Positions 536 to 36,562 of a stretch of DNA of 64,000 nucleotides are shown here, one piece after another. The position numbers and the translations under genes are program-made. The stretch lies in the sequence record MZ779063.1. One strand, given 5' to 3'. The notes beneath the pieces were generated by a model. It had not been told where the DNA came from. It saw only the letters and a list, made by a program, of their open reading frames with translations, and searched no databases. Position 1 is the stretch's first letter, and each line of letters starts with the position of its first letter.

Positions 536-841
536 ATGGTCAGAGAAGAAAAAATCAAACAAATGAAACAAGAATTACAAGCAATTTTAGACAAAGAAAT
601 TAGGTTTAATGGTAAACCAATTTCAAATAAACAATTTGAGAGAAAATTAGAACTAATGAAACAAATAGAAAAGTTAAAATTTGACATTAGATCAGAAAGA
701 TATCTGAGAAATGTCAAAAAGAATAAAATCACTGAGTTTAAGGGTAAAAGTGATTATGCGAAAGCAGGAAGACTACATCAATCTTTCCAAAGTAAAGAAG
801 AGCATAAAATATGGAAAGACGATTTATTAGTAATTCAATAA
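536..841 (+). CDS. Basic hypothetical protein
   Basis: ORF 518..841; ATG at 536 preferred because GGGAG RBS precedes it. Confidence 0.7.
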   Translation: MVREEKIKQMKQELQAILDKEIRFNGKPISNKQFERKLELMKQIEKLKFDIRSERYLRNVKKNKITEFKGKSDYAKAGRLHQSFQSKEEHKIWKDDLLVIQ

Positions 842-849
842 TATATTAA

Positions 850-1059
850 ATGGAGGAATTTAAAATGAAAAAGATTATTAAATTAAAAACTGAGTATGCA
901 TTAATTTTAGGAATGTTAGTTGGACTATTATTAGGATTATTAACTATGAATTTCTTTTTAGCGTTAGATATTATGTTCATGACAACTTTAGCATTTGTAG
1001 GTATGAATCATTATATCGGTGAAAAAAGAATGAATAATAGAAAAGGGGAAGTAAATTAA
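850..1059 (+). CDS. Small membrane protein (2 TM)
   Basis: Hydrophobic; likely start ATG 865 after GGAGG. Confidence 0.7.
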   Translation: MEEFKMKKIIKLKTEYALILGMLVGLLLGLLTMNFFLALDIMFMTTLAFVGMNHYIGEKRMNNRKGEVN

Positions 1060-1060
1060 T

Positions 1061-1255
1061 ATGCAGAATAAAATTAAGATAAAACCATGGATAGTATTTT
1101 GGACCGTATTTATTATTGGATTTATAGTTGGAGAAATTCTAGGTTATGTAGAAGGTAAATCATTGTTTGTAGGTATCGTATCAGCATTTATTTGTTTAGG
1201 AATTAATTATATGGTTGGAGAAATTAGAAGAGATATTATTAGAAATAGAAAATAA
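1061..1255 (+). CDS. Small membrane protein (2 TM)
   Basis: Two hydrophobic segments, AAGGGG RBS. Confidence 0.7.
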   Translation: MQNKIKIKPWIVFWTVFIIGFIVGEILGYVEGKSLFVGIVSAFICLGINYMVGEIRRDIIRNRK

Positions 1256-1282
1256 AAATTAATTAAATTATAAGGAGTTGAA

Positions 1283-1396
1283 TTGGATATGTTATTAGAA
1301 AACTTCATTACAATTATCGTGTTACTTGGCTTAATGAAATTTACAGGTTGTTTCAAATTTATGAAAGAAATCTGGTCTAACAAAGGTAACAAATAG
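1283..1396 (+). CDS. 37-aa hydrophobic peptide (MDMLLENFITIIVLLGLMKF...)
   Basis: Not in ORF track; AAGGAG RBS with TTG start (in-frame ATG at 1289). Confidence 0.65.
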   Translation: MDMLLENFITIIVLLGLMKFTGCFKFMKEIWSNKGNK

Positions 1397-1474
1397 CAAT
1401 AAAAGAGTGGATTATTTTCTATGATCCACTCTACATATTTAAATTAAAAAAAAAAACGAAAAGAGGAAATTAAA

Positions 1475-1981
1475 ATGAAAAAATTATTAATGACATTAGC
1501 ATCAATCGCTTTAATCGCAGTTATCGGAGCAGCAGGGATATTTGGTTATAGTAGTTTTAAAAGCTTAACAGTCAATAAAGAAGATAGTAAGACTGAAGAA
1601 GTATCTAAAAAGAAAGAAGACAAAAAAGAAAAGAAAGAACAAGAAGAATCAGATAATGTAGAAGTAAATCAACAACAAGATCAAACTCAAGAAGTAAATA
1701 ATAATGAACGACAAAATCAAACTACAGAAGATAATAATACAAATGTACAACAAAATCAACAACAAGAACCAGTAGTTGAAGAGAAAACTCAAGTAACAGA
1801 TAATGAAGGTAATAATATAGATGATATGGATTCAGAAGAATTTATTTCTAAATATACGGAAGGAATGGATGAAGAAGAAGCTCAAACAGTAAAAGACATG
1901 GCTGAAGAAGATTCAGGATATGAAGATTTCTTACGTGGACAAGTAGAAGCTAGACAAAATGGTCAAGGCGGAAATTACTAA
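1475..1981 (+). CDS. Membrane-anchored/secreted protein, paralog 1
   Basis: N-terminal MKK + hydrophobic helix ending GYSSFK, Q/E/N-rich linker. Confidence 0.85.
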   Translation: MKKLLMTLASIALIAVIGAAGIFGYSSFKSLTVNKEDSKTEEVSKKKEDKKEKKEQEESDNVEVNQQQDQTQEVNNNERQNQTTEDNNTNVQQNQQQEPVVEEKTQVTDNEGNNIDDMDSEEFISKYTEGMDEEEAQTVKDMAEEDSGYEDFLRGQVEARQNGQGGNY

Positions 1982-2004
1982 TAAGAAGAAAAGAGTGAAA
2001 TGAA

Positions 2005-2472
2005 ATGAAAAAAATCTTAAGTATTTTAACAGCGATAGCTTTAATCACAGTTATCGGAGCAGCAGGAGTATTCGGATATAGTAGTTTTAAAGAATTAAAT
2101 AATAGTAAAGATAGTCATAAAGTTGAAACAAGTAAAAAACAAAAAGAATTAGATGATAAAAATAACACTCAACAACAAGAACAAAATACATCAAAAGAAA
2201 ACAACAATATCCAACAACAATCAAATGAAGATAGCCTAACAGAAAATATGGATGAAGAATATAAAAAACAACAGGAAATGTATGAAAGGCAATCAAAAGA
2301 TGAAGCTCCAGAACCGGATTCTATAATTGGCAACCCACCAAAAAATTATGAAACTCCAGAAAAAGATAAAATAACTATAAGTGAGTTAAGAGAAGTTTTA
2401 GGCGATGATATTGATGAAAGTAAAATTGATGAAGCAAAAGCGTCTGGCGAATATATTAATGATGAAGAATAA
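2005..2472 (+). CDS. Membrane-anchored/secreted protein, paralog 2
   Basis: N-terminus nearly identical to paralog 1 (VIGAAGVFGYSSFK). Confidence 0.85.
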   Translation: MKKILSILTAIALITVIGAAGVFGYSSFKELNNSKDSHKVETSKKQKELDDKNNTQQQEQNTSKENNNIQQQSNEDSLTENMDEEYKKQQEMYERQSKDEAPEPDSIIGNPPKNYETPEKDKITISELREVLGDDIDESKIDEAKASGEYINDEE

Positions 2473-2503
2473 AAAATAAATAAAAAGAATAGAGGAAAAT
2501 AAA

Positions 2504-2980
2504 ATGAAAAAATTATTAGTATCATTATCAATCTTAGCAGTAATTGTAGTATTAGTAGCGGCAGGTGTGTTTGGATATTCAAAATATAAAGAAGTAGAAA
2601 TGAAACAACAGAATTTAGAAACACAATTAGAAGAAAAAAATTCCAATGAGCAAACTAATGAAAACGATCAACAACAAGAACAAGCAAATACAAATGAATC
2701 TCAAAATCAAGAAAATAGTTCAACAAAAAACAATAACGACAATAAACAAAAAGTATCTAGAGACAATGTATTTGACTATGCTTTAGCTGCAGTAAATGAA
2801 GTAGGTGACGCTGATTTAATGAAATTCCAAGAACCTTCTTACAGTGATGGTGTATGGACAATTGACACTAATAATAAATCTGGTTCAGGATCTAATACTA
2901 TAAAAGTATACGATGATGGCTGGGTACAGATATATGATGGATCTGGTGAAATAGCTCATGAAACAAAAATAGAACTATAA
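2504..2980 (+). CDS. Membrane-anchored/secreted protein, paralog 3
   Basis: Same anchor (AAGVFGYSKYK), Q/N linker, distinct globular C-domain. Confidence 0.85.
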   Translation: MKKLLVSLSILAVIVVLVAAGVFGYSKYKEVEMKQQNLETQLEEKNSNEQTNENDQQQEQANTNESQNQENSSTKNNNDNKQKVSRDNVFDYALAAVNEVGDADLMKFQEPSYSDGVWTIDTNNKSGSGSNTIKVYDDGWVQIYDGSGEIAHETKIEL

Positions 2981-3000
2981 TTATTAAGGAGTGTTGATGA

Positions 3001-3246
3001 ATGATTAAAACAGAAACAAAAAATGAACATTTATTTTTCAAATTTATTTCAGAATTAGGACTAACTAACGTGTATGATAACTTTATTGTAAGTGTTCCTT
3101 CAGGTCCTAAATTCATTAGATTAAATGAATTTGATGAAATAGAAGTATATGAAAAATGTAATGAAAATTTACTGAAAGTAGTCAATATAGATCCTAAATT
3201 TGATGATGTATTTTCGTTATTTTTCAAAATAACGAAAGGAATTTAA
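3001..3246 (+). CDS. Hypothetical protein
   Basis: AAGGAG RBS, followed by terminator. Confidence 0.75.
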   Translation: MIKTETKNEHLFFKFISELGLTNVYDNFIVSVPSGPKFIRLNEFDEIEVYEKCNENLLKVVNIDPKFDDVFSLFFKITKGI

Positions 3247-3252
3247 AATATT

Positions 3253-3288
3253 ATAGTCATGAATCTATTTATGTAGATTCATGACTAT
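3253..3288 (+). terminator. Intrinsic terminator-like hairpin
   Basis: 15-bp stem 3253-3267/3274-3288. Confidence 0.7.
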
Positions 3289-3324
3289 TAATTATATATT
3301 TTTTTATAAATATAAGAAAGAGAG

Positions 3325-4026
3325 ATGACATTAATTGTGTATGAAATTTCAATAGCTTTAATGTTTTTAATTGTAATATATTTTTCATTCAATACAATAT
3401 ATAAAACATTAGTAAGTGCGTATAACGAAAAATTAAAAGGAAAGTTCTTTTCCACAACGTTTTTTACATTTAGTTTATTATTTCCAATAATGATTATTGT
3501 ATTTTACAATATAGATGGAATAAATATTAAAATAGAATATGTTTTATTTTATTTCCTGTTGTTAATAATTAACTTTGCATTAAATAAATTTCTTAAAGTT
3601 CATGATATTATAGTATATACGTCATTATTCTATTCTTTATTTATAATGAATTACCATTATGAAATAGCTAATGACTTATATTTTGCTATATTTATTGTAA
3701 TAATCAATTTGATAATTCCATTAATTAAAATTGAATTTCAATTAATTGAAATGGCAATTCAAACTGATGGAGAATATAAAGATATAGATGTAAAAAAGAA
3801 TATAGTAAGACAGAATTTAAAAATAGTTAATTTAAATGATAATAATACACAATTCTCATTAGATGATTTTCTTGAAAGTAAATTTAATAATGATGAAGAA
3901 TCAATAAGTGTCTTCTTAGATGAAATGATTGAAAGAATATATTCTGAAAGAATAAATATAAAATTGTATTGTTATCATATATTAATGGGATTATTAACTA
4001 TATACTTTTTATTATCTCAAATTTAA
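3325..4026 (+). CDS. Polytopic membrane protein
   Basis: About 5-6 hydrophobic segments. Confidence 0.75.
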   Translation: MTLIVYEISIALMFLIVIYFSFNTIYKTLVSAYNEKLKGKFFSTTFFTFSLLFPIMIIVFYNIDGINIKIEYVLFYFLLLIINFALNKFLKVHDIIVYTSLFYSLFIMNYHYEIANDLYFAIFIVIINLIIPLIKIEFQLIEMAIQTDGEYKDIDVKKNIVRQNLKIVNLNDNNTQFSLDDFLESKFNNDEESISVFLDEMIERIYSERINIKLYCYHILMGLLTIYFLLSQI

Positions 4027-4027
4027 A

Positions 4028-4068
4028 TATATATTATAAAAATGAGTAATATTAATTAATATTACTCA
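4028..4068 (+). promoter_or_regulatory. Early promoter followed by perfect 26-bp palindrome
   Basis: TATATATTAT 4028-4037; TGAGTAATATTAATTAATATTACTCA 4043-4068. Confidence 0.7.
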
Positions 4069-4091
4069 AAAAAAATAAAGGAGTTTTTATC

Positions 4092-4622
4092 ATGGAAAAT
4101 AATTATTATGCAGTTGCACAGTTCCAAAATCAAAGAGAGTTTAAAGGAAAAGAGTATATTTATAAAGTGCCAGAATATTTATTAACGAAAGAAAATTCTT
4201 ATTTCCACAAATACGCATTAGTTTCTAATTTAAATTTAAATGAAGTTAATTTAAATGATGATGGAGTTCATAAAGATGATTTAGAAAAATTTGCAAGTTC
4301 AGTTAAAGTTGTTAAAGTATTAAAAATTATGAATGAAGAAGAATTTATACAATCAGAATATGTAAACTCTGCAGAGGATTTAAATCAAAGAATTAATCGA
4401 GAAGGAGAATCTTTTGAATATAAAAATATCGTATCATTCTTCGATAATGAATTAAAAACACATATTGATTATATTTCTGAAAGTAACAGAAAAGAAAAAT
4501 TAGAAAAATTAATGAAAATCAGAATGGAAAAATTAAATAAAGAAAAGGACTTAAAAGAAAGAGTAAGTGAATATAACGATAAAGAATTAGATAAATTATT
4601 TATCGAATATAAAAAATTATAA
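4092..4622 (+). CDS. Hypothetical protein
   Basis: 176-aa ORF, GGAG RBS. Confidence 0.8.
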   Translation: MENNYYAVAQFQNQREFKGKEYIYKVPEYLLTKENSYFHKYALVSNLNLNEVNLNDDGVHKDDLEKFASSVKVVKVLKIMNEEEFIQSEYVNSAEDLNQRINREGESFEYKNIVSFFDNELKTHIDYISESNRKEKLEKLMKIRMEKLNKEKDLKERVSEYNDKELDKLFIEYKKL

Positions 4623-5540: not shown

Positions 5541-6038
5541 ATGTTAAAAAATAAAAATATTGAAATTAACCAAGATATTATTAATAATGAATTAATGAAA
5601 ACAAAATATATGGAAGAGGCGATGTTAAAAGTGTTAAATCAAGACCTAGTAATCAATTTAAGATTTTTAAAAGATAATCTACTATCTGGATGGGAATTTG
5701 AAAATAATGTAGCTGAATTTAAAGAAATAGAAAAATTCTATGATCCGTCATTAAAAATAAGACTAATTTTTAAAGTTAATGAAAAAGAAATCAAGTATAC
5801 ACTTAATGAAGATATTCAAGATATGTTAGAGAATTTCATGATTAAGAAAGCTGATGATGAAAGAGCATGTGAGATTATTAAATCTGTTATTGAGTATGAA
5901 TTCTTTAAGAAAGAAAATAAAAAAGATCATGAACTTGATATGAATACAATAGATTTATTAATGGGTAAAGTTAATGAATTAAAAATTAAATACAATATCA
6001 GTAATAAACAAGCTAAGAAATTATATATAGCATTTTAA
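5541..6038 (+). CDS. Hypothetical protein
   Basis: 165-aa ORF with RBS. Confidence 0.8.
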   Translation: MLKNKNIEINQDIINNELMKTKYMEEAMLKVLNQDLVINLRFLKDNLLSGWEFENNVAEFKEIEKFYDPSLKIRLIFKVNEKEIKYTLNEDIQDMLENFMIKKADDERACEIIKSVIEYEFFKKENKKDHELDMNTIDLLMGKVNELKIKYNISNKQAKKLYIAF

Positions 6039-7168: not shown

Positions 7169-7627
7169 ATGAGATACTTTAAAGGTATAGTAGCAGGAAA
7201 AGACTTTTTCTTAAAAGCAGATAATGAAGAAAATGCCATTAAGGAATTAGCATCAAAAGAAATTAATTCTATAGGATCTTTTACAATGTTAAGTAATGAA
7301 AAACAGAAATACCTAATAATTTTCTTTAATGAAGATGAAGATAAATTTGTTGTTGGAAATGGATTAGAATCATATATATCATTAGACAGTCTTAAATCTG
7401 AATTAGAATCTAAAGATTTAGAATGTTATTATTTAGATTTAGGTAATACAGATAATATCGAGATAAACGGTATTATAAAAAATCAAGAATACACATTAAC
7501 AGAAATAATAATGGAAAGTATTAAATTAACTATGAATGATTTTTATCAACAAGTTATAAATTCTGTATTAACTGAATTAACTGAAAAAGAATACAAAAAT
7601 TCAATAGTTGTTAAAAATTTTAAATAA
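7169..7627 (+). CDS. Hypothetical protein, C-terminal tag family member 1
   Basis: Ends ELTEKEYKNSIVVKNFK. Confidence 0.8.
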   Translation: MRYFKGIVAGKDFFLKADNEENAIKELASKEINSIGSFTMLSNEKQKYLIIFFNEDEDKFVVGNGLESYISLDSLKSELESKDLECYYLDLGNTDNIEINGIIKNQEYTLTEIIMESIKLTMNDFYQQVINSVLTELTEKEYKNSIVVKNFK

Positions 7628-7646
7628 CTAGGAAGGAATAGAAATA

Positions 7647-8117
7647 ATGAGAAATAAAAAAAGAAGCATAGATAGTTTGATAAATAATAATCTAGAATTA
7701 CCAATTGAGATTACTGAAAATTATATAAATAATTTTATATACAAATCATTAACTGCTATAAATAAGAAAAAAGAAATAAAACCAAATCAAACTTATATAA
7801 TTAATCATAAGAATGAATTATTTAATAAAGCAGATAATTTCATAAATTGTATTTTAGAATTATTAAAAGGTGATGTGGGTACTTTAATAGATAAAAAAGA
7901 TTTAAAGTTAAAAAGAAATGTAAAGAAAGACAATATAAGTAATTGTCTTACAATATATACTATTGTAGAAACTTTAACTTACAATAATTCTATAACAATG
8001 ATGATGGTAAAAAATGTAAATAATACCAATAAGGAAGTAACTGGTGAACTAATATTTGATATTAATATAAGTGATAAATTAGGTAAAGATAATTACAATG
8101 AAAATATTTATATTTAA
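7647..8117 (+). CDS. Hypothetical protein
   Basis: 156-aa ORF with RBS. Confidence 0.75.
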   Translation: MRNKKRSIDSLINNNLELPIEITENYINNFIYKSLTAINKKKEIKPNQTYIINHKNELFNKADNFINCILELLKGDVGTLIDKKDLKLKRNVKKDNISNCLTIYTIVETLTYNNSITMMMVKNVNNTNKEVTGELIFDINISDKLGKDNYNENIYI

Positions 8118-8129
8118 TTACTATTTAAA

Positions 8130-8149
8130 TATATATTATATAAATGAAG
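8130..8149 (+). promoter_or_regulatory. Early promoter TATATATTAT-ATAA-ATGAAG
   Basis: Match to the recurring motif. Confidence 0.7.
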
Positions 8150-8172
8150 TTAATTAAAATACAGGAGATGAA

Positions 8173-8520
8173 TTGGATATGTTAAACGATACTAAAAAAG
8201 TTTTAGACAGAATATATGACAAAATAAATGGTGATTTAATTGTTATTTCAGAGTGTAAAGATCTATTTGATAAGGAATTAAATTACACTTTAACTGAAGG
8301 TAATGAAGAAACAACAAATCTTGATTATTTGGCAGATTCTTTAATTGTAGTTTCTTCAGATATATTTACTTTAAATGAAGTACTTAATATTGATGAAGAA
8401 ACTATTAATAATGAACTATTAGCAGAATTTAAACTAAGCTATAGAATGATACAGAATTTTCATATGAAATTAGAATTAAAAAAATATAAATTAAAAAAGA
8501 TTAAAACCTCGGTTGAATAA
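8173..8520 (+). CDS. Hypothetical protein
   Basis: 115-aa ORF, AGGAG RBS. Confidence 0.75.
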   Translation: MDMLNDTKKVLDRIYDKINGDLIVISECKDLFDKELNYTLTEGNEETTNLDYLADSLIVVSSDIFTLNEVLNIDEETINNELLAEFKLSYRMIQNFHMKLELKKYKLKKIKTSVE

Positions 8521-8539
8521 ATATAGGAGATGATTAGGA

Positions 8540-9025
8540 ATGAATTATTTAAAGAATGAAAAAGGGGAGGTCTTTCCAGTCAATGAAGAAGGAATGGAGA
8601 ATATCATATTCTTTCTTCTAGACTACTCACAGAAAAATGATTATAACACAATGAATTTGATTAAAGAGATAAATGATCACGTGATGAAAGGCGAAAATAT
8701 AAGTAATGAATTTATTAATGAAAAAACAAAAGAAACGATATTAACTTTAGGTAAAGTAAAAGGTAATTTAACTAATGAATTAGCTAGAAGTGGTTATATA
8801 GTTAATTTCTCTAGAAATAAAATATCACTATCGATATATGTAAAAAATAATAGTTTTAAATTAGTAAGAATTTCAGATCATAATATTAATAAAAAAATAA
8901 ATAAAAAAGGTGTAATCAGTAATAGATTTGACGGACAATTAGTATGTAAAAATAATCTAGTTAAATCTTCTGATTTGAAAAAGCATGGAATTGATATTAA
9001 TGAAGGAATATATTATTTAGAATAG
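8540..9025 (+). CDS. Hypothetical protein with SxxIY...VRISDH motif
   Basis: 161-aa ORF; RISDH-type motif. Confidence 0.75.
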   Translation: MNYLKNEKGEVFPVNEEGMENIIFFLLDYSQKNDYNTMNLIKEINDHVMKGENISNEFINEKTKETILTLGKVKGNLTNELARSGYIVNFSRNKISLSIYVKNNSFKLVRISDHNINKKINKKGVISNRFDGQLVCKNNLVKSSDLKKHGIDINEGIYYLE

Positions 9026-9026
9026 G

Positions 9027-9320
9027 ATGAAACTATATATGAAAAAGATAATAATGTTTTTAGGTATTTTGTTACTAACAACGGTATTGGTCGGTTGTGG
9101 AGAAAGTGTTGATTCAAAAGATAAAAAAGATTCAATCAAAACAGTAACTATTTATAGTAAAGGCGGTAAAGTATTACATCAATATGAAGGAAAAGTTAGT
9201 GCTGAGAGAGTAACGGATAACAAATTTACTAAAATTGATATAGACGGTAAGAAATTAAGAGTTGTAAATGCAGATGTAGTTATTGAAGAAAAAGGTATTG
9301 AGAAATTTGAAACAAAATAA
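9027..9320 (+). CDS. Lipoprotein
   Basis: Signal peptide MKKIIMFLGILLLTT with lipobox VLVG-C. Confidence 0.8.
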   Translation: MKLYMKKIIMFLGILLLTTVLVGCGESVDSKDKKDSIKTVTIYSKGGKVLHQYEGKVSAERVTDNKFTKIDIDGKKLRVVNADVVIEEKGIEKFETK

Positions 9321-9328
9321 AGATTAAG

Positions 9329-9372
9329 TATATATTATAATTATGAAGAAAGATATTATCATATATCTTTCT
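9329..9372 (+). promoter_or_regulatory. Early promoter plus conserved 5' hairpin
   Basis: TATATATTAT 9329-9338; hairpin 9347-9372 homologous to 83-109. Confidence 0.7.
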
Positions 9373-9382
9373 AATAAAATTA

Positions 9383-9694
9383 ATGGAGGAATTTGTTATG
9401 GCAAAATTAAATGAAGAAGTATTAAGAGACTTTCAAGTAAAAACTGAAATTGATGGAGAATTTGAAGTAATGGAATCTGATGAGCTTGGTGTTGATGAAG
9501 CTTATGAAATTGAATTAATTAAAGAATTGGGATTAGATGTCGATTCAAGTGTATTCTCTTATGCAATATCAGAAAAAGATGATGAAGAAAATACGTATAC
9601 TTTAGAATATAGTCATGAAGGCGTTCTATTAACTATTCATGATATCGATTTTGAAAATGGTATTCATGATACTATTTATAAAAATGTAATTTAA
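9383..9694 (+). CDS. Small acidic hypothetical protein
   Basis: Likely start ATG 9398 after GGAGG; D/E-rich. Confidence 0.75.
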   Translation: MEEFVMAKLNEEVLRDFQVKTEIDGEFEVMESDELGVDEAYEIELIKELGLDVDSSVFSYAISEKDDEENTYTLEYSHEGVLLTIHDIDFENGIHDTIYKNVI

Positions 9695-9703
9695 TGATTT
9701 AAG

Positions 9704-9736
9704 TATAGCTGATATCTTTAACGGATATCAGCTATA
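9704..9736 (+). terminator. Intrinsic terminator
   Basis: 13-bp stem TATAGCTGATATC/GATATCAGCTATA plus T-tract. Confidence 0.8.
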
Positions 9737-9777
9737 TTATTTTTATTTTTTTACTTAAAGGAGATGAAAAGGATAAT

Positions 9778-10389
9778 ATGAATTATTTTGAATTGGAATA
9801 TACAGGTTTAATTAATAATAATAAATTAGATAATCTAGTTCTACACAAACAAGAAAATGAAGAAATTGAATCGGGTGTTTTAAATATGGTTTTATTTAAA
9901 TTGTATCTAAAAGAATTCTATAATGATAATATGGATGATAATGATTTATGTAAGAAACTAAAAATGGAAATAAGAAGTATTCATAGTTATAATAATTCAG
10001 AAATTTATATTAATGAAGACTTTGCTGAAATATATGATGGTATTAATCCGAATAATAATATTAAATCAGGAAAAATAAATAAAGATTATGAATATTTATT
10101 TAAATTTATTAAAGATAATATAAATGAAAAAGATTTAAATAATATACATGTGATTAAATTTACAACATTTGAAATAGAGAAATATAAACCTGTTGTGATT
10201 TTTATAAACTCAGATAAACTTAGAATTAAGACCAATAAATCAATTAGTAGATATACATCAACAAATGAATTTGTATTCTATAATATTTCAAGCGAAAGTT
10301 TATATACATTAATGAAAAATACAAATAGAATAAGAAATATAACGGAAAAAGAATATAAAAAAGAATTAGTTAAAAGGAGTTTTTTATAA
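9778..10389 (+). CDS. Hypothetical protein, C-terminal tag family member 2
   Basis: Ends NITEKEYKKELVKRSFL. Confidence 0.8.
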   Translation: MNYFELEYTGLINNNKLDNLVLHKQENEEIESGVLNMVLFKLYLKEFYNDNMDDNDLCKKLKMEIRSIHSYNNSEIYINEDFAEIYDGINPNNNIKSGKINKDYEYLFKFIKDNINEKDLNNIHVIKFTTFEIEKYKPVVIFINSDKLRIKTNKSISRYTSTNEFVFYNISSESLYTLMKNTNRIRNITEKEYKKELVKRSFL

Positions 10390-10937
10390 TGTATGAAGTT
10401 AATAAAAAATTTAAATATGCTAAAAGAGATAAAGAATTCACATTATTCCACCATAAATCAAAAGAAAAAATAACTGATTCATTTATAATTAATAATTATA
10501 TTTCATATGTATTATATCAATGCTACGAAAGAACACCAGGAAATGCAGAAGTTTGGTTGGAAATTAATGATATAAATAATATAAAAGGTGATTTCTTATT
10601 TAAATTTATGTTTGACAACAGACCTTCTTTTGGTTCTAATTATTTTCCTAAGTGTAAATTAAATATACAAGATAACAGTGATAATAATATTGTAACTATT
10701 GAATTTAGTGATAAATATAAAAGACATAATTTTATTCTAGAAGAAATATCTAAATTTAATAATGTTCATATTAATTTTTATGAAGAAGTATTATTTACTA
10801 ATGAAGATGAAGAATTCAAGTTATTAAAGAATGTATTTAAAACTGATAACATTAAATATTACCAAAATAAAGATTTAATTAGTTATATTTCAGACAAAGA
10901 AGCTAGAAAAATTTTAGTAAAAGAAAACTTTAAATAG
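10389..10937 (+). CDS. Hypothetical protein, C-terminal tag family member 3
   Basis: Ends YISDKEARKILVKENFK; TAATG coupling to previous gene. Confidence 0.8.
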   Translation: MYEVNKKFKYAKRDKEFTLFHHKSKEKITDSFIINNYISYVLYQCYERTPGNAEVWLEINDINNIKGDFLFKFMFDNRPSFGSNYFPKCKLNIQDNSDNNIVTIEFSDKYKRHNFILEEISKFNNVHINFYEEVLFTNEDEEFKLLKNVFKTDNIKYYQNKDLISYISDKEARKILVKENFK

Positions 10938-10953
10938 AATAGGGGCAAATAAA

Positions 10954-11487
10954 TTGAATAAATATTTTAAATTTAAATTAAATAATAAAAGTGATTACGA
11001 TGTATTTAAATTTTCAGGAAATGAAGAAGAAATAAGCGATTCTAAAATTATAGAGTCTTATTTTGATTATATGTTTAATTATTATATAAATGAAGCAATA
11101 CCTGACTCCAGTATGATTAATATTGCTGTATTTACTGAAGGTAAAAGAAAAAGATTATTGAGATTTACTATAGATAAACCACCAATTTATATAAAAGAGC
11201 CAGTTAGTACTTTATTTATGAATGAAAATGATGAAGATAAACAAATTAATTTTAAAGAATTTAACGAAATTAAAAAATTTATACACGAAAAGATTATGGA
11301 ATTGAATAAAGGTGAATTTTATATTTATATTGATTATAATTTTGATTATTCTTATAGAATAGATTACGATGATGTATTTGATAAAATATTATTTAATAAA
11401 AATAATCTAAATCTTTATTCATCATTTATTAAAGAAACAGATGAAAATGAATATAAAAATTATCTAGTAAGAGAGAATTTTAAATAA
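10954..11487 (+). CDS. Hypothetical protein, C-terminal tag family member 4
   Basis: Ends ETDENEYKNYLVRENFK. Confidence 0.8.
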   Translation: MNKYFKFKLNNKSDYDVFKFSGNEEEISDSKIIESYFDYMFNYYINEAIPDSSMINIAVFTEGKRKRLLRFTIDKPPIYIKEPVSTLFMNENDEDKQINFKEFNEIKKFIHEKIMELNKGEFYIYIDYNFDYSYRIDYDDVFDKILFNKNNLNLYSSFIKETDENEYKNYLVRENFK

Positions 11488-11504
11488 GGAAGTGAGACAG
11501 ATAA

Positions 11505-12281
11505 ATGGAATATGTTATGATAAATAAATTATTAACAAAAAATGATTCATCTGAATTAAAAATAAACATGGTTAAACTATATAAAGAGGAAGAAGACTTT
11601 TTCAATTTCTTTTTAAACTTTATTATAGAATATAATTCATATTATATAGGAAATTATAAATACTTTTATAGTATAGATTCATTATCAGATTATAATTCAG
11701 ATTATCAAATAAATGGAAATCCTTATGTGCCATTTGAGGAAGGGATAAAGGTAAATGAAGTCATTCATATTTATAAAAATAAATTATTTAGGAATATAAG
11801 TAAAGATATTGAAAATAGAATAACCGTACTTTATGTAGAAGACAAAGAAGACGATATTTTCTATTATATATTAATATCTAATTACTTTAATAAAAAATTT
11901 AAAAAAGAATATAAAGAAGAACTTCCCGATAAAGAAAAATTGTTAGCTAGACTTATAGTAAGATCCTTTCTAAATGAAAAAATTTTATTAGATTCACATT
12001 CAGAATTTTTAGTTATTAAAGATAAAGAAAAATTGAATAATTTAATTAATAATTTAATGAAAAATCAAAAATACAAAATTTTAAACTTTGATTTCTTAAG
12101 TAATAGGGAATTAAAATATAATGGAGTAATATTTAATACAAATTTATATGATAATAAACTAATCCTGAAGTATTTAAAAGGAATAGACTACAAAGATATT
12201 ATTAATAAAGATAAAGAAAAAATTACGTTTATAAATGAAAAAGGATATAAAAAACTAGCAGTGAAAGAATCATTTAAATAA
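11505..12281 (+). CDS. Hypothetical protein, C-terminal tag family member 5
   Basis: Ends FINEKGYKKLAVKESFK. Confidence 0.8.
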   Translation: MEYVMINKLLTKNDSSELKINMVKLYKEEEDFFNFFLNFIIEYNSYYIGNYKYFYSIDSLSDYNSDYQINGNPYVPFEEGIKVNEVIHIYKNKLFRNISKDIENRITVLYVEDKEDDIFYYILISNYFNKKFKKEYKEELPDKEKLLARLIVRSFLNEKILLDSHSEFLVIKDKEKLNNLINNLMKNQKYKILNFDFLSNRELKYNGVIFNTNLYDNKLILKYLKGIDYKDIINKDKEKITFINEKGYKKLAVKESFK

Positions 12282-12359
12282 ATAATAAATATTCTCATCC
12301 ATTCATTATATAATAACTTTTAATTATATAATAATTTTTAGAATGGATGAGATGCTTTT

Positions 12360-13019
12360 ATGAGTAATTATTTATATCGTTTTAACAAAGAGAATGTAAA
12401 TATCTTCTATCATAAAAGGACTAATAATGGTCATAAAATGTTATTTAATAATAGTAATGATAAAGATAGATCTATATACTTAATAAATACTGATGAAGAA
12501 ATCAATAATATGGAACTAGTATCTAAATATATTGCTGGAAAAGTATTTGAAATACTAAACCAAGAAAATATGAAAATAGTACATATGGATTTCTTTAATA
12601 GTAAATTAGAATTCTTTATAAGTAGATCATCCAAGAATAAATATATAATGAATATGTATTTTAGTTTAAAAAGTTATAATGATCTAATAGAAAATGAAAA
12701 AGAATTTATAGATAGTGTTAATGAGCTTAATTTAGACTTTTTAAAATCAGTTTCTTTAGATCAAGACAATAATCATGTATTAGATATGACATTAATATTT
12801 TTAATAGATAAAAATAAAATAGATGAATTTATTAAAAATCTATTTTACATTAATTATGTAAAGATAATAGAATTTATAATAGATACTATATCAGTATATG
12901 CAGATGATTACAAGAAATTTAATGAAGAAATAAATATTCTTTTGGATCATAGAAATTTTGTAGAGGAAATAACATATAAAGAATATAAAAAGATAATGAC
13001 AAAAGAGATGTTTATTTAA
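12360..13019 (+). CDS. Hypothetical protein, C-terminal tag family member 6
   Basis: Ends EITYKEYKKIMTKEMFI. Confidence 0.8.
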   Translation: MSNYLYRFNKENVNIFYHKRTNNGHKMLFNNSNDKDRSIYLINTDEEINNMELVSKYIAGKVFEILNQENMKIVHMDFFNSKLEFFISRSSKNKYIMNMYFSLKSYNDLIENEKEFIDSVNELNLDFLKSVSLDQDNNHVLDMTLIFLIDKNKIDEFIKNLFYINYVKIIEFIIDTISVYADDYKKFNEEINILLDHRNFVEEITYKEYKKIMTKEMFI

Positions 13020-13032
13020 GGAGTAATTAACT

Positions 13033-13743
13033 ATGAAGATTTCAGCCAATAAAGAATTATTAGGAAAGAAAGTTATACCTTTAGGTTTTAAACAACTTAA
13101 TAACTTATATAAAGATCATGATTATGTATATTTAAGAATTCCTGAAATATTTAATGTATTTGATAAGTATCAATTTAAAGATGATAAATTTGTATATCTT
13201 AAAACAGAAATAAAACCCAGTACTATTGTAGATTTAATAGATTCTTTATCAAGTGGTTTTAATTGGTTAATAAATGAATATATTTCTAATGATATACTAA
13301 ATATACATTATATAAAGAAAAATTTATTAGACATTTCCAATAGTGAATATAAAACTCTAGAAGAAACAAGATCTCAGTTAGATTTAGAATTAGAATTCAT
13401 AAGTAGTAATGAAAAACAAAGAAAGCAATCTAATATTTTAATAAAGGATATTCATAAAGAAATAAATTATATAAGGAATGAATACACAAAAGTATTCACT
13501 CTTAAGAAAAGTAAAACCAGAAATAATAAACCAATAAAAATAAAAATTAGAAATTTATATGATGAAGATCCAATATCTATATTAAAAATAATATTAGACT
13601 TAGGAGAAGAATATTGTATGAATAGTACTATATTTAACGCATTTACTTATTCATTAATGTTAACAAATAATTTAGATTTCATAGACGAAAAAGAATTTCA
13701 GGATATAGTTAAGAAAGAGAAAGTGAAAAATACTTTCATTTAA
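13033..13743 (+). CDS. Hypothetical protein, C-terminal tag family member 7
   Basis: Ends FIDEKEFQDIVKKEKVKNTFI. Confidence 0.8.
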   Translation: MKISANKELLGKKVIPLGFKQLNNLYKDHDYVYLRIPEIFNVFDKYQFKDDKFVYLKTEIKPSTIVDLIDSLSSGFNWLINEYISNDILNIHYIKKNLLDISNSEYKTLEETRSQLDLELEFISSNEKQRKQSNILIKDIHKEINYIRNEYTKVFTLKKSKTRNNKPIKIKIRNLYDEDPISILKIILDLGEEYCMNSTIFNAFTYSLMLTNNLDFIDEKEFQDIVKKEKVKNTFI

Positions 13744-13749
13744 AACATT

Positions 13750-13790
13750 ATTCATATAGTTTGAGGAAATTTTCCTTAAGCTATATGAAT
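13750..13790 (+). terminator. Intrinsic terminator closing the early block
   Basis: Long stem ATTCATATAG...CTATATGAAT with long T-tract. Confidence 0.8.
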
Positions 13791-13939: not shown

Positions 13940-14503
13940 ATGGAAAAATATGATAAATTAACTGAAGAATTAGAAGCTTTATATGAGCAATCTCAAGAAG
14001 AAGCTCTAGAAGAACAGTTCGAAAGCATTATCGAATCAACTGATGAAGATAAAGCAGAAGAAGTTGAAGATAAAGATTCTAAAGAAGATTCAGACGAAGA
14101 AGAAACATCTGTTGAAGAACAATTTAACAGTATCTTAGAATCAGAAGATGAAGAATCTGATGAGGAAGAAGATGACGAAGATTCAGAAGAAGAACCGGTT
14201 GAAGAATCTGATGAGGAAGATTCAGAAGACGATTCAGAAGATGATGAAGATTCTTTAGAAGAAGAATTAAATCGTTTATTTGAAGAAAATGAAGACCCAG
14301 AAATGGATGTCGAAAAGCAAACTACAAAAGCTAATGACATGAACTCAAAAAAATCATCTGACTCTACTGAACATCCTGAAGAAGATGTGAAAAAAATCAC
14401 TTCAGAAGATGAAGACGAAGAAGAAGATGCTGAAGATGACGAAGAAGAATCTACTAATGAAGATGAATCATTAGAAGAATCATTAGATCGTATCTTTGGT
14501 TAA
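13940..14503 (+). CDS. Extremely acidic repeat protein (possible prohead core/internal protein)
   Basis: D/E/S tracts punctuated by LEEQFESIIE / VEEQFNSILE / LEEELNRLFE / LEESLDRIFG. Confidence 0.75.
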   Translation: MEKYDKLTEELEALYEQSQEEALEEQFESIIESTDEDKAEEVEDKDSKEDSDEEETSVEEQFNSILESEDEESDEEEDDEDSEEEPVEESDEEDSEDDSEDDEDSLEEELNRLFEENEDPEMDVEKQTTKANDMNSKKSSDSTEHPEEDVKKITSEDEDEEEDAEDDEEESTNEDESLEESLDRIFG

Positions 14504-22108: not shown

Positions 22109-25100
22109 TTATCTCACATCACTTTCAAAATTACTTAATGACATACGCACTATAGATATTTGACCTAATTGTGCACTTCCTGTAGAACCTGTTATAGAAA
22201 GCTGTATCAGTAAATATTTATTAAAATTATCAGGAACTCCTAAATCTATAGTTGCTATTCTTGTTGAAGTATCAACTTTAGAACTTCCTGTTACCCCTAT
22301 TTCTTTATGCATTTTTATATCACTATTTGTTTTCCAACCCATACCATCACTAAATGTAATATAAAGATTATTGCCTTCAGTTACTGTTGCCCTGTAAACA
22401 AATTTTAGATATCTTCTATTATGATGATAACTAAATACATTTAGTGTCGCTTTGTCTTTACCTGATGATTCATCTAATTGTGCATTATCGTAACCATATT
22501 TATAAATATCTCTATAAATATTATATGTTCCAGCTCTAGTATCGTCTAATACTATAGGTCTAAAGTTTTTTTCATTGGTAGCATGAGCAGATCCACTAAC
22601 CCAGTTCCAAGTTCTAACTCCAGGCATAGTAGGCATAAAGTTAGTTTCAGATAAGAACATACCTTCAACCATTTGGTCAACACCGTTTTTTCTTATATTT
22701 AATCCAGTTGAATTTATTTCCACAAAATTATCAGTATCTAGAGCACTTTTTGATATTCTCAATACATCATTTGTAAATGAAAGATTGCCTTTATTATTAT
22801 ATATTTTAACTTTATCCGTATTTAGATCTATACTACTAGATATCATTTTAATTGATTCCGAGTTCATAGTTATCTTACTTGATAAAGAACTAGTGCTATA
22901 TTTATCTAATGCCGAAGGTGTCCATGGTTTTAATTGATTACCTTTTTCTAATTTTGGAAGAGCGTAATAAAATACAGTTCCATCATTATAAGCATCAGTT
23001 TTATCATAGTTGTTATAACGTAATAGAAATCTTAGATAATTGGTTCTTCCATTACTAGAGTTTCTAGGTATTTTAGCTGTAAAACTATATCTAACCCATT
23101 TATCAAATATAAATTCACTAGCAGGTATCTCAACTACACCAAATTTAGGATTGGTAGTTTGTTGTATATTCTCATAAGTTGCCACCTCAAAATATATCTT
23201 ATAAGTAAGGAATTTTCTAGCTGTTGCAGGAATGTATATATAAACAGAGCCTGTTACTTCATCTCCAATACTAAATTGACCTTCTTGACCTACAGGTAAA
23301 TAGCTTGACATTACTGCAGGCCATGTTGTTCCAAAGTTATTATGTTTATATTTGAAGACATCTTTTACTTTATTAATATCAAAACTAGTATCGTCATTAG
23401 AATCTTTCGACTCAATTACAGTTATATTTTCAAAAGAGGCAGTTATATCAGCATTATCTGTAGTTCCTGCTTTTGCAGCATAAAATAACAACTGATTAAT
23501 TTTATCCTCATTAGGAGTAGTAATTTCTATTACGTTTCTTTTAGTTGTGCTAACAGGATAATCTATTCTATTAACTGAACTAATTTCAGGTAATGTATCC
23601 AAATCAGTTGAATACCCTGAACCTTTATAAGGATATCTATATGGGTACAATGAAATTAAACCTTCACTATTTTTCCCAGATTGTATATTATAATCAAATG
23701 CTACTTTATATTTAGTATTCTTTTTTAGATATCCATTTAATGGAAGAGTCATTCTTTTATAAGTTCCTCTGGATACATTGTTTACACGATAAACTGAACC
23801 TAAAGCTAGATTGTTATCGGTATTAAAAGTCATATCATCTTCAGAAGCTATTGAAAATCTAGGATTTTTAGGATAATTTCCTTCATCCAGTCTTATATTT
23901 TTAAAGTAAAACTTACCATCTGAATATGGTGAAACGGAGGCTATTATTAATCTTAATTGAGTCATTCCGCTTAAATCTGAGCTAGTTAGATTGAACGTAG
24001 TTTGGAAAGTACTCCAATCATCATTGATATCATTTTCAGCAGATATTGTATAACTTAAAGGATTGATTGAACTTGATGATTTGTTCACACGTAAACTTAC
24101 AGTAATAGACCCTTTAGTAGTTTCTAAAGATTTTCTAACATCAAAACTAAAAGTATAAGTACCTGGCTTAATTTTAGATAATTTTAAACTTCCATCTGCA
24201 TCTTTATAATCAATATTAGATGTTTGCCATTGTTTCCATCCTTCATTAGAATTTGAAATTATAGAAAGATAATCTCTATAATTTGTAGTTGTATCTGTTG
24301 GATTTGATTCAGTTGATCCACTAAATGTGTATGTCCAGTAAGGTGAGTCAATCTTATCCGCAAAGTTTAAATTGTTTGATGTATCATCATCATTAGTTTT
24401 CCAACCTTCCCATCCATTTCTAAGATCAGAGTTAATAAGTGCGTTATCTGCATTAAGATAATTATTTATTTTATTAACAGATAACTCAATAGAATCTGCC
24501 TTTTGATCTATTTTAGAAGAAACAGTCGATATTGAAGTCTCAATATCTTCGGGAGCTGGTGTCCAATCAGTAGATTTATTACCTTTTTCAAGTTTAATCC
24601 ATTCTATAGTTGATAGATAATTTCCATCTTTAGGCATATCGTATATTGTTAATAACTTACTTAAATTTCTTGAAGATTGTTTGGCAACCCCAGTACCTAT
24701 CCATAAACCCTTTTTAGAATCATATGTTAAATTACATAAGTTTGTATAACCGTCATCAATATAAGCACTAAAATAGTGGTCTTTATTATTTGTATTACCT
24801 TTTATTGTAACTGTATAAGTCTCATCCACTATCCAATCTAATGACAAATTATATGGTTTCCCATATAATGTATGATTTACATATTTATTATTTTTACTAT
24901 CTAAAACTAAATTTCTTCCACCAATTCGAATATCATTAATTTGAGAGTTTACATCTTCGGGAGCTGGAGACCAGTCAGTTGCTTTATTACCCTTTTCAAT
25001 TTTAATATTTTCAATAGAGAATTTATCTCCATTGTTATTGTTATAAGCATATATAGCCCATCTAGTGTTAGTTCCAGAAGTCTTAGTTATTTTAGAAGTG

Positions 25101-28100
25101 TATTTATATCTAAATTTTTTATTACCAACATTAGTTATTGTATCGCTACCAATAGACATACCTGGATCTACTACACTATCATATATTCTGAAAACATCTC
25201 CACGTTCCATTTGTAAGTCAAATGATATAGAAATTTCATCTCCGACTTTTACTTTATTCAATAACTCATCAATATAAATTCTCCATAAATATTGATAAGA
25301 TCCATTTGAATTATCTTCAAAGCCTTTATTCCAAGATAAACTGTTTTCTAATAAGTTTCTTGCACCAATCTGTATATTATTAATATTTTCATTAACTCTA
25401 TTTTCTACTGCAGTAACTTGTGATGTAATTTGATTTGGTAATTGTTGGATACTAGAAGTATTAGCAGCAATTTTACCATCCATCTCATCTTGTTTACTAA
25501 CAATACTAGTAATCTTATCAGTTTCTACTTTTAATTCACTGTATTGATTTGTAGTTTTAGTATCTAATGTCGTAATAGAAGAAGCGTTAAGTGTAATATC
25601 TTTCTCAGTTTGAGTTATACGAGTTTCATTTTTAGCAAATCTACTTCTATAATCTTCTGGCGATACGTCCCAAGAAGAAGCCACATTACCTTCTTCTAAT
25701 TGAATATGACCTACATAAGTATCCTTAGTTGTATTATCAGCAGTAAACTGAATTTTAAGGAAATTATTAGTTTTAGAATTGAATCTCAACTCATAACGAG
25801 TAGGAGTTGTTGTCAATGTCTTAGCAGATTCAGTCATAGTAATAAGATAATCTTTAGGAGAAACTTCAGTAGTTAAACTTGAAGCTTTCGTAATAGGTGT
25901 TTTAATTACTGGAGACGCAGCTGCTGAATAAGCATCATAGCTTAATACATAATTCGTATTAGGTTTAACTGCAACTATTTGAGACACTTCAGATAAATTT
26001 GTTCTAGTATTAGCATAAGTTATACTATTATTAACTTTTTTAGTAATGCTAGCTAAGAAAGGTAAATCAAATTTTTCAGTTCCAGCAAGCATGTTCTTAG
26101 TACCAATTTTAACTTTTCCCGATATAGCTTCAGTACTAGTCTCAGTTGTTACTCTTTGATCTATTCTACCAATTTCAGCAGTAATATTTGTATTTAAATT
26201 TGATACAGTTTCATTAACGCTAGTTTTAGTGGCATAATCTTTAGAAATATCTTGTTTAATAGAATCAGCTGTAGTAGTAATGCTAGCCTGTAAAGTTTGT
26301 TTAGTGTCATTAATAGCAGATTGTCTATCTGTAACTTCTTGAGTTATTTTATCATTAGCTACTTTTAATTCACCAGTTAAATCACTGATATTGCCTTCAT
26401 TTTTAGTAACTTTATCAGCAGTAATAGTATAGCTATCATTAAGTTGGGTTACTTTAGTTGACAAATCAGAATAATTTTCATCACTTCTATCTATTCTAGA
26501 AACTAATGATGTGATATTATCAGTGGCTACTTTTAAACTACCTTCTAAATTAGTGACATTTTCTTGAGTGACTTTTTGTTCTTCAGAAATAGCTTTAATT
26601 TCTCCAGCAACTGTTTCTAATCTAGATGATATATCTCTGACAACTTTATCATCTAAATCTTCTATTTTCTTAGATACTTCTTGACGAATCATATCTACTG
26701 TTTGACTGACTTCAGAGAAACCTTCGACTACCTGTTTACGATAATCATCCATTTCTTTTTTAGTCATCATAGTGGCTACTAATTCATTAGTGTCAATTAC
26801 AGTTTTCTTAACAGATTCTAATCCAGTGACATCGTACATTTCTAAATTAGTAACCCAGAATTTAGGTTCATCAGAACCATCTTCAAATTCTGTTACATCT
26901 GAATCTTCAGATTGGTTTACCTTAAAGTATAATGTCATATAGAAAGCACCGTATAAGAAACCATTAGTACCTCTAACATTTTCTTTAGTAATTAAACCTT
27001 GACGGTGATACCAACCATTAAATTCTTCAGGATCGTCATCTTCTTCTGTATTAGGAATATCTTCATCTTTAATTAAAGACCATTCAACATTACTATCAGT
27101 GAATGTTCCTGAAACTTTAGTTCCGGCAGGGAAACCTCCATCTTCAGAATCGTAATTAATTAAATCAAAAGGTCTATTTAAATAGATACAATTGTTTTCT
27201 CTATCAATAGCTCCAAAATCCCAACCGTTCATGAATACATTTCTAGAATAAGTTGATTCTCCATAATTATAACCATCATTACTCTTGAAATTCCAAATAA
27301 CTAATGAATGATTATCATTATAATCTACTAAATTAGGATTAATATTTTTATTAACTATTCCTGCATTTGATACATTATAATTATTAGTCATATTCTTAAT
27401 AGCTTCTTCTTCATCTACCGGAGTTGAATTAGTTTCAACTGGTTCTTCAGATTCAGACATAGGGAGATCAGGTTCTGTAGTTTTATCTTCTTCAGGAGTA
27501 TCATCTGCATATATTACACTATCTTCTTCTTCATCAGGTAATGCATTAGGATCATCTATAGAAAGAATATCATCTGCATCACTAGGTAATATAACTGATC
27601 CATCTCTATCGTAATCATAAACAGGAGTATCATCTTCTTCATCTAACGGTGCAGATTGGAATCTATAAGTGTCATCAAGACCATCAAGACTCTTGAAATA
27701 AATAACTTTATCCCCTTGTCTTAATTCTTGAGCTAATTCAATTACAGGTTTCTCACTACCCATTACATGTTGTGATTCTATTAATTGTCCGTCTTTATCA
27801 TAACTTAAATGACCTATAGAAGAAGGAAGAGAATTATTATTCTTCATAAACATAGAAAGTTTGTATGTTTTCTCTGGATTAATTGGTATTAATCTTTCAG
27901 AAGAAACAGTATTGTTAAATCCTTCCATTCTAAATGAAGCTGCAGATTGGAAAGCGTCTGAATTATCGTAATACATTCCAGGAAAGTTTGATTCATCTCC
28001 TTGATCTGCATTACCATTAAAAATTAAGTTATCTCCACGAGAATCCATATAGTAATTAAATTCTTGTTGTGATACTTCTAATTCTTGACCTAAATCTTCT

Positions 28101-32013: not shown

Positions 32014-32820
32014 TTATTTTACATTAGTTCTGTATTCAAGAATAGTTTTTACTAAAAGCATATTAGCATTTAATTCTTTAGAAGTTCCTTCAGCTTCTTC
32101 AGCTTTAAGTTTACCTACTTGTTCTAAAGACATCATTTCCATTGGATTAATATTTTTAGGAATTTTACCTGAATTAAGTTTAATAACTTCGCTAGCTTGC
32201 ATAGCTTTAATAGATTCATTTAAAAATTCATTAATGACTGAATCTGAAAAGCTTTTAATAACTTTGTTATCTTCTTTTTTAGTGATATCATTACCTTTAA
32301 TTAAGTCTGCTCTGTTATAATATACAAATAAATCAATATAAGTTACTAAGATTATATTGTATATTTCTTGGAAGTTTAAATTAGTGCCCATATTTTCATC
32401 AGTGTAATTCAACATTAATGCAAATACTCTTTCACTAATATTACTTTGTCCTTCTGGAAGAAATTCATCAAAACCTACACTTCTAGACATTGATAAGAAG
32501 TCCATAATATTTCTTGCAAAGTTTTCTTCACTGTTTAATTCATTTTCATCAGTAAAGAATTTAACAAAATCAGAATATGATAGACCAGTAATATCATCTG
32601 ATTTTCTTCTAATCATTTTCATACTATAAAAATCTCTAAATGTTTTACTATCTCCAGTTGAACCTAATTTATCTTCTAAGATTTCTAATTCTTTTCTGTT
32701 GGATTCTTCTTTCATTTCTTTCATTAATACATTTGAAACATCCTCGTTAATTCTTTCTAAATCATTGTTAAATAATTCAATTGCTTGGTTTAATTCTTCC
32801 ATTATCCATTTCATCTCCAT
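32014..32820 (-). CDS. Hypothetical protein with its own early-type promoter
   Basis: 268-aa ORF. Confidence 0.8.
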   Translation of the reverse strand: MEMKWIMEELNQAIELFNNDLERINEDVSNVLMKEMKEESNRKELEILEDKLGSTGDSKTFRDFYSMKMIRRKSDDITGLSYSDFVKFFTDENELNSEENFARNIMDFLSMSRSVGFDEFLPEGQSNISERVFALMLNYTDENMGTNLNFQEIYNIILVTYIDLFVYYNRADLIKGNDITKKEDNKVIKSFSDSVINEFLNESIKAMQASEVIKLNSGKIPKNINPMEMMSLEQVGKLKAEEAEGTSKELNANMLLVKTILEYRTNVK

Positions 32821-32858
32821 TTATAAAAATTATTTAAGATTATTTAATTACCATTAAT

Positions 32859-32877
32859 CTCATTTATATAATATATA
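32859..32877 (-). promoter_or_regulatory. Early promoter TATATATTAT-ATAA-ATGAG
   Basis: Match to the recurring early motif on minus strand. Confidence 0.65.
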
Positions 32878-32901
32878 TTTAAATAATGTTTATAATTTTA
32901 T

Positions 32902-33555: not shown

Positions 33556-33963
33556 TTCCTTTTTATTAATTAAAAATTAATTAATTTATTATATTTATAT
33601 TCCTTATTTATTAAAAATTCTTTAATTAAAAATATATTTATTAAAAATTTATTAATAATATTTATATTAATTAAAATTTAATAATTAAAAATAAATAAAC
33701 TACCCCCTAAATCCCCCTTCTTGTAAAACAAATTCCAAACTATATATTAAATTATTAGCTCAGAAAATTAAAAATTTTTACTAAATAATATATCTGTTAC
33801 AAAATGTATTAATCTAATACAGATATATTAATTCTTTTTTATAAGTATAATTATATAATTATTTCAATCATTGGTATGTTTATTTTTGAATTGAATAGAG
33901 AACATATTAAGTTAATATAGATTTTTAAATTAAAAATATTATAGAAAATATACAGAGATATAT

Positions 33964-33975
33964 AACAACCTTTTA
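33964..33975 (+). promoter_or_regulatory. Late promoter AACA-N6-TA
   Basis: AACA ACCTTT TA upstream of baseplate operon. Confidence 0.6.
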
Positions 33976-34013
33976 TTAAATATACAAAGAGAGCGAGGAT
34001 TAAATGAGATATA

Positions 34014-36557: not shown

Positions 36558-36562
36558 AAAGC

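Follow-up and report, generated by a model that had tools for sequence, protein, structure and literature searches.

The stretch of DNA considered here, referred to below as the window, comprises 64,000 nucleotides and is identical (100%) to the Staphylococcus jumbo phage vB_SauM-UFV_DC4 (DC4; MZ779063.1), with window position 1 corresponding to position 186001 of the DC4 record. Between window positions 7169 and 13743, seven open reading frames (ORFs) end in one and the same short C-terminal sequence, which is referred to here as the tail. These seven ORFs belong to a far larger family in this phage, and the tail looks more like the keystone of a private, undescribed family than like a loose address tag. 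The reading favored here, with moderate confidence, is that of a clade-specific multigene family that has grown by tandem duplication, in which a constrained C-terminal strand and helix would serve as the keystone of the fold, with rapid divergence in all other parts of each protein.

All seven window ORFs lie on the plus strand and read to their ends with a common tail in which Phe is the penultimate residue, as an earlier note on this DNA (the original prediction) had claimed. That note also described six of the genes as contiguous and one as displaced, and this arrangement is indeed observed: the six occupy 9778–13743, and the remaining one sits 2.1 kb upstream, with five non-tail genes between. 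Named by its first position, the displaced member is 7169 (7169–7627; UFVDC4_00206), which encodes 152 amino acids (aa). The array is headed by 9778 (9778–10389, 203 aa) and continues with 10389 (10389–10937, 182 aa), 10954 (10954–11487, 177 aa), 11505 (11505–12281, 258 aa), 12360 (12360–13019, 219 aa), and 13033 (13033–13743, 236 aa), the last of which carries a variant tail with a four-residue insert. A 24-residue hidden Markov model (HMM) of the tail was scanned against 1359 six-frame pieces, the seven members included. All seven scored 24–40 bits (35 bits for 7169, 24 bits for 13033), as compared with 7.8 bits for the best of the other 1352 pieces. In a leave-one-out version of this test, six of the seven were recovered right after the training members at 13.6–17.9 bits (15.1 bits for 7169) versus 7–8.6 bits for the best non-member, whereas the insert-variant tail of 13033 was not recovered. 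For 9778, 11505, and 12360, the tail as read, the HMM, and the leave-one-out test all agree. Elsewhere in the window, a 165-aa plus-strand ORF at 5541–6038 has an end that resembles the first half of the tail and stops early, in Phe; it receives no score from the tail HMM and may be a degenerate member.

The tail unit reaches upstream into a hydrophobic stretch and measures ~24 residues overall (range ~17–24). Its pattern is that of a hydrophobic strand, followed by [ST]-[DE]-E-K-E-[YIVF]-K-x-x-[LI]-[VI]-K-x-x-F-K and the stop codon. Counting back from the last residue (-1) in a set of 30 members, Phe is found at -2 in 29 and Val, Ile, or Thr at -6 in all 30; 29 have Lys or Arg at -10, 25 have Lys at -13, and 23 have Glu at -14. 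The charged positions -14, -13, -12, -10, and -5 are retained in 73–97% of members, and Lys or Arg occupies -13, -10, -5, and -1 at these same frequencies, the last residue being mostly Lys. The term “amphipathic”, which had been applied to the tail, is only approximate, since in a helix the hydrophobic positions would fall on two faces (-11, -8, and -7 versus -6 and -2). Two such faces would suit a helix with packing contacts on at least two of its sides rather than an amphipathic peptide lying on a surface. The insert of 13033, present in five of five orthologs examined, amounts to roughly one helical turn and would hold Phe in register. Bacterial sliding clamps are bound through pentapeptides of the QL[SD]LF type. 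The tail does not match this motif, as it has no Gln in its columns and a Leu-to-Phe spacing of 5 rather than 3.

The seven window genes are real members of the family, but they are an incomplete list. When an iterated tail model was run over the whole genome, 25 firm and about six borderline tail-bearing ORFs were found among the 262 annotated genes of DC4. They form four clusters, all on one strand. In DC4 record coordinates, these are located at 13.8–18.8 kb; at 21.8–33.9 kb, where about 16 genes lie beside smc; at 166.9 kb together with 172.8–174.7 kb; and at 193.2–199.7 kb, which is the cluster of the window. The scan also bears out the strictly C-terminal placement that had been proposed: every match stops 0–1 residue before the stop codon, and no internal match was found at E<0.01 across the DC4 scan, the 13033 insert variant excepted.

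DC4 is low in G+C (19–31%), its proteins are rich in Lys, Glu, and Asn, and the next start codon lies 0–20 nt from the gene ends. A shared ending could therefore be suspected of being an artefact of composition, of a DNA-level signal that overlaps the gene ends (a ribosome-binding site or terminator), or of recent gene conversion. In the shuffle control that the original prediction had named as a refuting test, a model trained on the window seven only scored at least 10 bits at the C-termini of 14 further DC4 ORFs, whereas shuffling the last 30 residues of the ORFs gave a mean of 0.005 in 200 shuffles; the motif is far commoner in real ends. Likewise, no tail was found among 3304 six-frame pieces of Listeria phage LPJP1, which is equally AT-rich and, with an RNA polymerase beta-prime that is 46% identical, the closest relative outside the Staphylococcus phages. 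At the DNA level, codons agree in 72.6% of pairs of identical tail residues versus 73.0% expected from codon usage, and therefore there is no nucleotide-level conservation, overlapping signal, or recent gene conversion. The substitutions that do occur in tails are conservative at the amino-acid level. The LPJP1 scan, the codon sharing, and the shuffles together rule out an artefact, to which practically no weight is given here. Judging from codons and substitutions, selection acts on the tail peptide itself, and the copies are old.

The relatives of DC4 are S6, PALS_2, Madawaska, MarsHill, LY01, AH12, PB50, Machias, and SA1, and together these phages constitute an AR9-like clade that has uracil DNA and two multisubunit RNA polymerases. 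By every search made, the family is restricted to these ten Staphylococcus jumbo phages and one metagenome contig. A tblastn search of 50,697 phage records with a canonical member returned only the ten phages. Word-indexed databases and an exhaustive profile search of 1.84 billion proteins yielded the same phage group only, and with 10954 the exhaustive search recovered its own lineage only. Nothing scored above threshold in Pfam for 27 members, the seven window genes had no match in PHROGs, and the PDB gave no match by sequence profile and no significant match by fold (best E 0.04). Back-translated tail patterns, of which two were used, had no match in IMG/VR with either one, two matches at chance level in 185,579 cellular genomes, and fifteen matches in metagenomes, with a single real contig among them. 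This contig, Ga0079226_10017883 (5.2 kb, 21% G+C), carries six consecutive tail-bearing genes at 649–4553 on its minus strand, an array that is the counterpart of DC4 record 22–27 kb, and it points to an unsequenced relative in an environmental sample. The family is not mentioned in the DC4 and MarsHill genome papers or in a jumbo-phage survey (PMC7824862). As a separate observation, LPJP1 possesses five tandem genes (32769–36976, minus strand) whose C-termini have a conserved segment in common that differs from the tail, and paralog arrays with conserved ends may recur in this jumbo-phage group.

The original prediction saw no similarity among the proteins upstream of the tail, here referred to as the bodies. 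Profile searches agree for most bodies, but 10389 and 10954 are full-length homologs. Both match one single gene in AH12, PB50, and SA1, and a 10954 profile stripped of its tail retrieves 10389 at E 1.2e-14; it is on these two results, rather than on an hhalign score, that the homology rests. The hhalign score for this pair (100%) was discarded as inflated, since both alignments contain shared orthologs. Copy number differs accordingly among relatives, with two genes in DC4 and Madawaska and the 10954 type only in LY01. On this sequence evidence, 10389 and 10954 are tandem duplicates. A few sequence-linked subgroups also occur in the other tail clusters.

Bodies of orthologs are only 25–35% identical between phages whose RNA polymerase beta-prime is 89–95% identical (DC4 compared with AH12/SA1-type relatives), and the bodies therefore evolve very fast. 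When DC4 is compared with AH12 or SA1, the last 17 residues of five fast genes are 41–71% identical, as opposed to 22–36% for the middle of the protein. For example, the tail of 7169 is kept in orthologs at 29% identity, that of 9778 in orthologs at 30–37%, and that of 11505 in orthologs at 33–48%, with a tail identity of 47–71%. At the other end of the range is 12360, the slowest-evolving member, with orthologs that are 75–98% identical. Loss of the tail was not found in any of 33 orthologs examined. Ratios of nonsynonymous to synonymous substitution rates (dN/dS), computed against Madawaska and LY01, are 0.23–0.67 for the five fast bodies (0.29–0.38 for 7169) and 0.07–0.20 for 12360 and 13033 (0.07–0.11 for 12360), compared with 0.19–0.20 for pooled tails and 0.10–0.32 for neighboring genes. 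All of these values are below 1, indicating real genes under purifying selection.

The most confident structural information comes from an AlphaFold model of 10954, with a predicted local distance difference test score (pLDDT) of 88 and a predicted template modeling score of 0.84. In this model, the tail consists of a strand (residues 159–162) and a helix (164–175) with pLDDT of 85–95, the last three blocks (92, 95, and 85) ranking with the parts modeled at the greatest confidence. There is no disordered linker before the tail, as residues 131–177 have pLDDT of 79–95 and no segment falls below 50. The protein begins with a hairpin (residues 2–21). The model of 9778 is weak (pLDDT 55), yet the two models have the same order of elements: a hairpin, a long helix, four strands, a helix, a strand, a strand, a helix, and the tail. 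This match has a z score of 2.8, and none of 400 permutations scored as high, so that a topology common to 10954 and 9778 is suggested, although suggested only.

Taken as a mechanism, the favored reading would run as follows. The Staphylococcus jumbo phages (DC4, S6, PALS_2, and the MarsHill group) would each carry about 30 genes of the family, or roughly 10% of their genes, which would have multiplied through tandem duplication within arrays of probably early genes on the same strand. The copies would then have diverged until most bodies became mutually unrecognizable, all of them holding on to a C-terminal unit of 17–24 residues. This ordered unit would supply the final strand and helix of the domain, and would be required as a keystone in each copy while the surface changes. 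It may in addition provide a contact in common, to other members of the family or to a single partner of them all, since the distance from Phe to the carboxy terminus is fixed at one residue and the charged positions are conserved. Both features exceed the needs of packing, and a shared-partner role for the tail is possible for this reason. All members would presumably have a fold in common, and the family may serve in host takeover or anti-defence. As its second choice, the original prediction had taken the tail for the final conserved helix of a paralog family that diversifies fast. This alternative fits better than its first, given the tandem same-strand arrays, the duplication with a difference in copy number, the subgroups, the matching element order in two members, and the very fast divergence of the bodies.

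A number of results weigh against the favored reading. Comparison by hhalign of tail-less ortholog profiles was negative for every pair but one, and in searches with tail-less window profiles, tail-bearing proteins make up 0–2 of the top ten, without enrichment. Fold searches with both models (viral library, BFVD) yield their own orthologs only and no other paralogs; the BFVD matches to 10954 have template modeling scores of 0.65–0.79. The argument from shared topology stands on weak ground owing to the poor 9778 model, and burial of the tail is suggested by confidence values that are themselves raised by tail conservation. No early-type promoter belongs to the six-gene array itself, and a terminator-like hairpin precedes it. 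In favor of related bodies, tail-bearing ORFs are enriched for an N-terminal hairpin-like motif, with a median leave-one-out rank of 16 of 197 and 11 of 31 ORFs in the top 5%, but the signal comes mostly from the 22–34 kb and 173 kb clusters and is weak for most window genes. The top scores for this motif go to two tail-less proteins, one encoded at record 171866–172759 (24866–25759 of sequence L004), directly upstream of the 173-kb tail cluster, and the other at window 8540–9025. These two proteins may be relatives that lost, or never had, the tail.

Some findings favor a modular address tag, i.e., a movable C-terminal peptide by which effector bodies of unrelated kinds would be docked to a single partner or site, for example the phage RNA polymerase, a replication centre, or a host machine. 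Body homology is undetectable by profile or fold search, the tail is exactly C-terminal in 30 of 30 paralogs with its Phe and charged positions kept as described above, and it is better conserved than the bodies. On the other hand, the tail is ordered, linker-free, and contiguous with the domain in the 10954 model; tandem arrays and a demonstrable duplication indicate common descent; two unrelated-looking members have a common element order; and there is no trace of tail DNA having moved between genes, synonymous sites being saturated. A docking or sorting signal on unrelated bodies, which was the first choice of the original prediction, is not supported in that form, and the address tag is judged unlikely. 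In its boldest version, about 30 structurally different early proteins would be recruited through an invariant Phe-X-COOH helix to a single hub, which might be the phage transcription/replication factory or one host machine. Such an address code is a tentative idea, doubtful at present; if true, a signal of this kind that sorts effectors phage-wide would be a first.

SSB possesses an acidic C-terminal docking tail that ends in a hydrophobic residue, and the T7 proteins gp2.5 and gp4 possess acidic, Phe-terminated tails; in all of these, an aromatic residue next to the carboxylate is critical. The tails of the DC4 family resemble them in being short, conserved, located at the extreme C-terminus, and equipped with an aromatic residue near the carboxylate. 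The SSB and T7 tails, however, are acidic, follow a disordered linker, and occur on one or two proteins, whereas the DC4-family tail is mixed or basic, predicted to be ordered, and found on about 30 proteins. The likeness to SSB C-tails that was drawn earlier is not upheld, given a different, Lys/Arg-rich charge pattern and the lack of a disordered linker in the 10954 model.

A C-terminal degron, by which the tail would mark a class of early proteins for a protease or adaptor and for joint clearance at a set time of infection, would also call for a strictly C-terminal element in a fixed terminal register. The ssrA tag and similar bacterial degrons act from the extreme C-terminus, and the family resides in probable early blocks. 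The tail is nevertheless predicted to be folded rather than exposed, and it is not known to resemble any Firmicute degron, so that this explanation is considered improbable.

The placement in early blocks is suggested by a motif of ~26 nt, approximately TTAAaTATATATTATAwwwATGAAG, that lies 40–60 nt upstream of start codons and has 51 near-matches across the DC4 genome. The motif resembles an early promoter of the AR9 type, and its core is that reported for MarsHill and AR9 (MarsHill genome paper). The motif is found directly upstream of the tail-bearing record genes 21815, 24456, 29063, and 174261. There are four sites in the window, all on the plus strand: 65–90; 4028–4050, which heads the block containing 7169; 8130–8150; and 9329–9350. 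The last of these is the nearest upstream of the six-gene array, with a terminator-like hairpin at 9702–9738 (plus strand) between the two. A second such hairpin closes the array at 13750–13790 (plus strand), and both coincide in position with annotated terminators of Madawaska. The sequence TATATTAT at 9733 was considered as a promoter of the array and rejected, as it belongs to the terminator hairpin and the extended motif is absent. A scan for sigma-70-type promoters gave fewer matches than in shuffles and is uninformative in such AT-rich DNA. Early expression is a fair inference for the family; the six-gene array may be early as well.

Early-type motifs near several members are also relevant to a fourth possibility, in which the tail would be a capsid-targeting propeptide that loads proteins into the prohead and is then cut off by the prohead protease. 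DC4 encodes a prohead protease. The T4 prohead protease site has the consensus [LI]-x-E, and four of the seven window tails start with residues of this kind. The other three do not, and T-D-E is found instead in the 22–34 kb array. The 15 proteins that liquid chromatography–mass spectrometry detected in DC4 virions include no tail-bearing one, although this proteome is shallow and the evidence weak. With the early-type motifs added, the comparison to T4 capsid targeting made in the original prediction is not supported, and capsid targeting is regarded as very improbable, more so than a degron.

As a concept, a short peptide common to dissimilar proteins and acting as a shared address is familiar from the T4 capsid-targeting sequences and from encapsulin cargo-loading peptides. 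In T4, the signal is located at the N-terminus; encapsulin peptides come after flexible linkers, and their genes lie beside the shell gene. The DC4 family differs from T4 in that the T4 signal is carried by late, virion-packaged proteins, whereas the family is not seen in virions, lies near early-type promoter motifs, and has a tail that is part of the predicted fold.

With regard to the favored reading of a multigene family, a close parallel is provided by lineage-specific paralog expansions in jumbo phages, such as the zinc-ribbon family of Bacillus phage G with its ~35 copies (Iyer et al. 2021, PMC7824862). In both cases, tens of copies of a small protein occur in one jumbo phage, mostly in arrays and within one lineage (PMC7824862). 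Unlike the phage G family, the one described here is recognizable only by its 17–24-residue C-terminal unit and a weak N-terminal hairpin, and its bodies are beyond profile detection and contain no known domain. Large eukaryotic DNA viruses likewise possess tandem, fast-diverging paralogs with copy numbers that vary between strains. Multigene families of this type are generally tied to host interaction. As these viruses belong to another realm and infect other hosts, without any sequence or fold relation, the analogy is an evolutionary one only.

For a group of Staphylococcus phages that includes therapeutic candidates, about one-tenth of the genes represent one undescribed family, and the C-terminal unit, the only stable feature of the family, provides a handle on roughly 30 “hypothetical proteins” together. 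Should the tail serve as a shared interface, one binding partner would account for the way in which much of the early program of these uracil-DNA phages is organized. Should it be a fold keystone only, the family would clearly exemplify how bodies can diverge past recognition while a terminal constraint stays fixed, and it would warn of families that profile methods miss.

Two other plus-strand ORFs lie near the array. The first, at 9027–9320, encodes a 97-aa protein with a lipoprotein-type signal peptide and an LVGC lipobox, and is located among probable early genes; its product is a candidate membrane-anchored protein, e.g., for superinfection exclusion. The second, at 13940–14503, directly follows the array terminator and encodes a tail-less, extremely acidic protein of 187 aa that is rich in Asp, Glu, and Ser and contains internal repeats.

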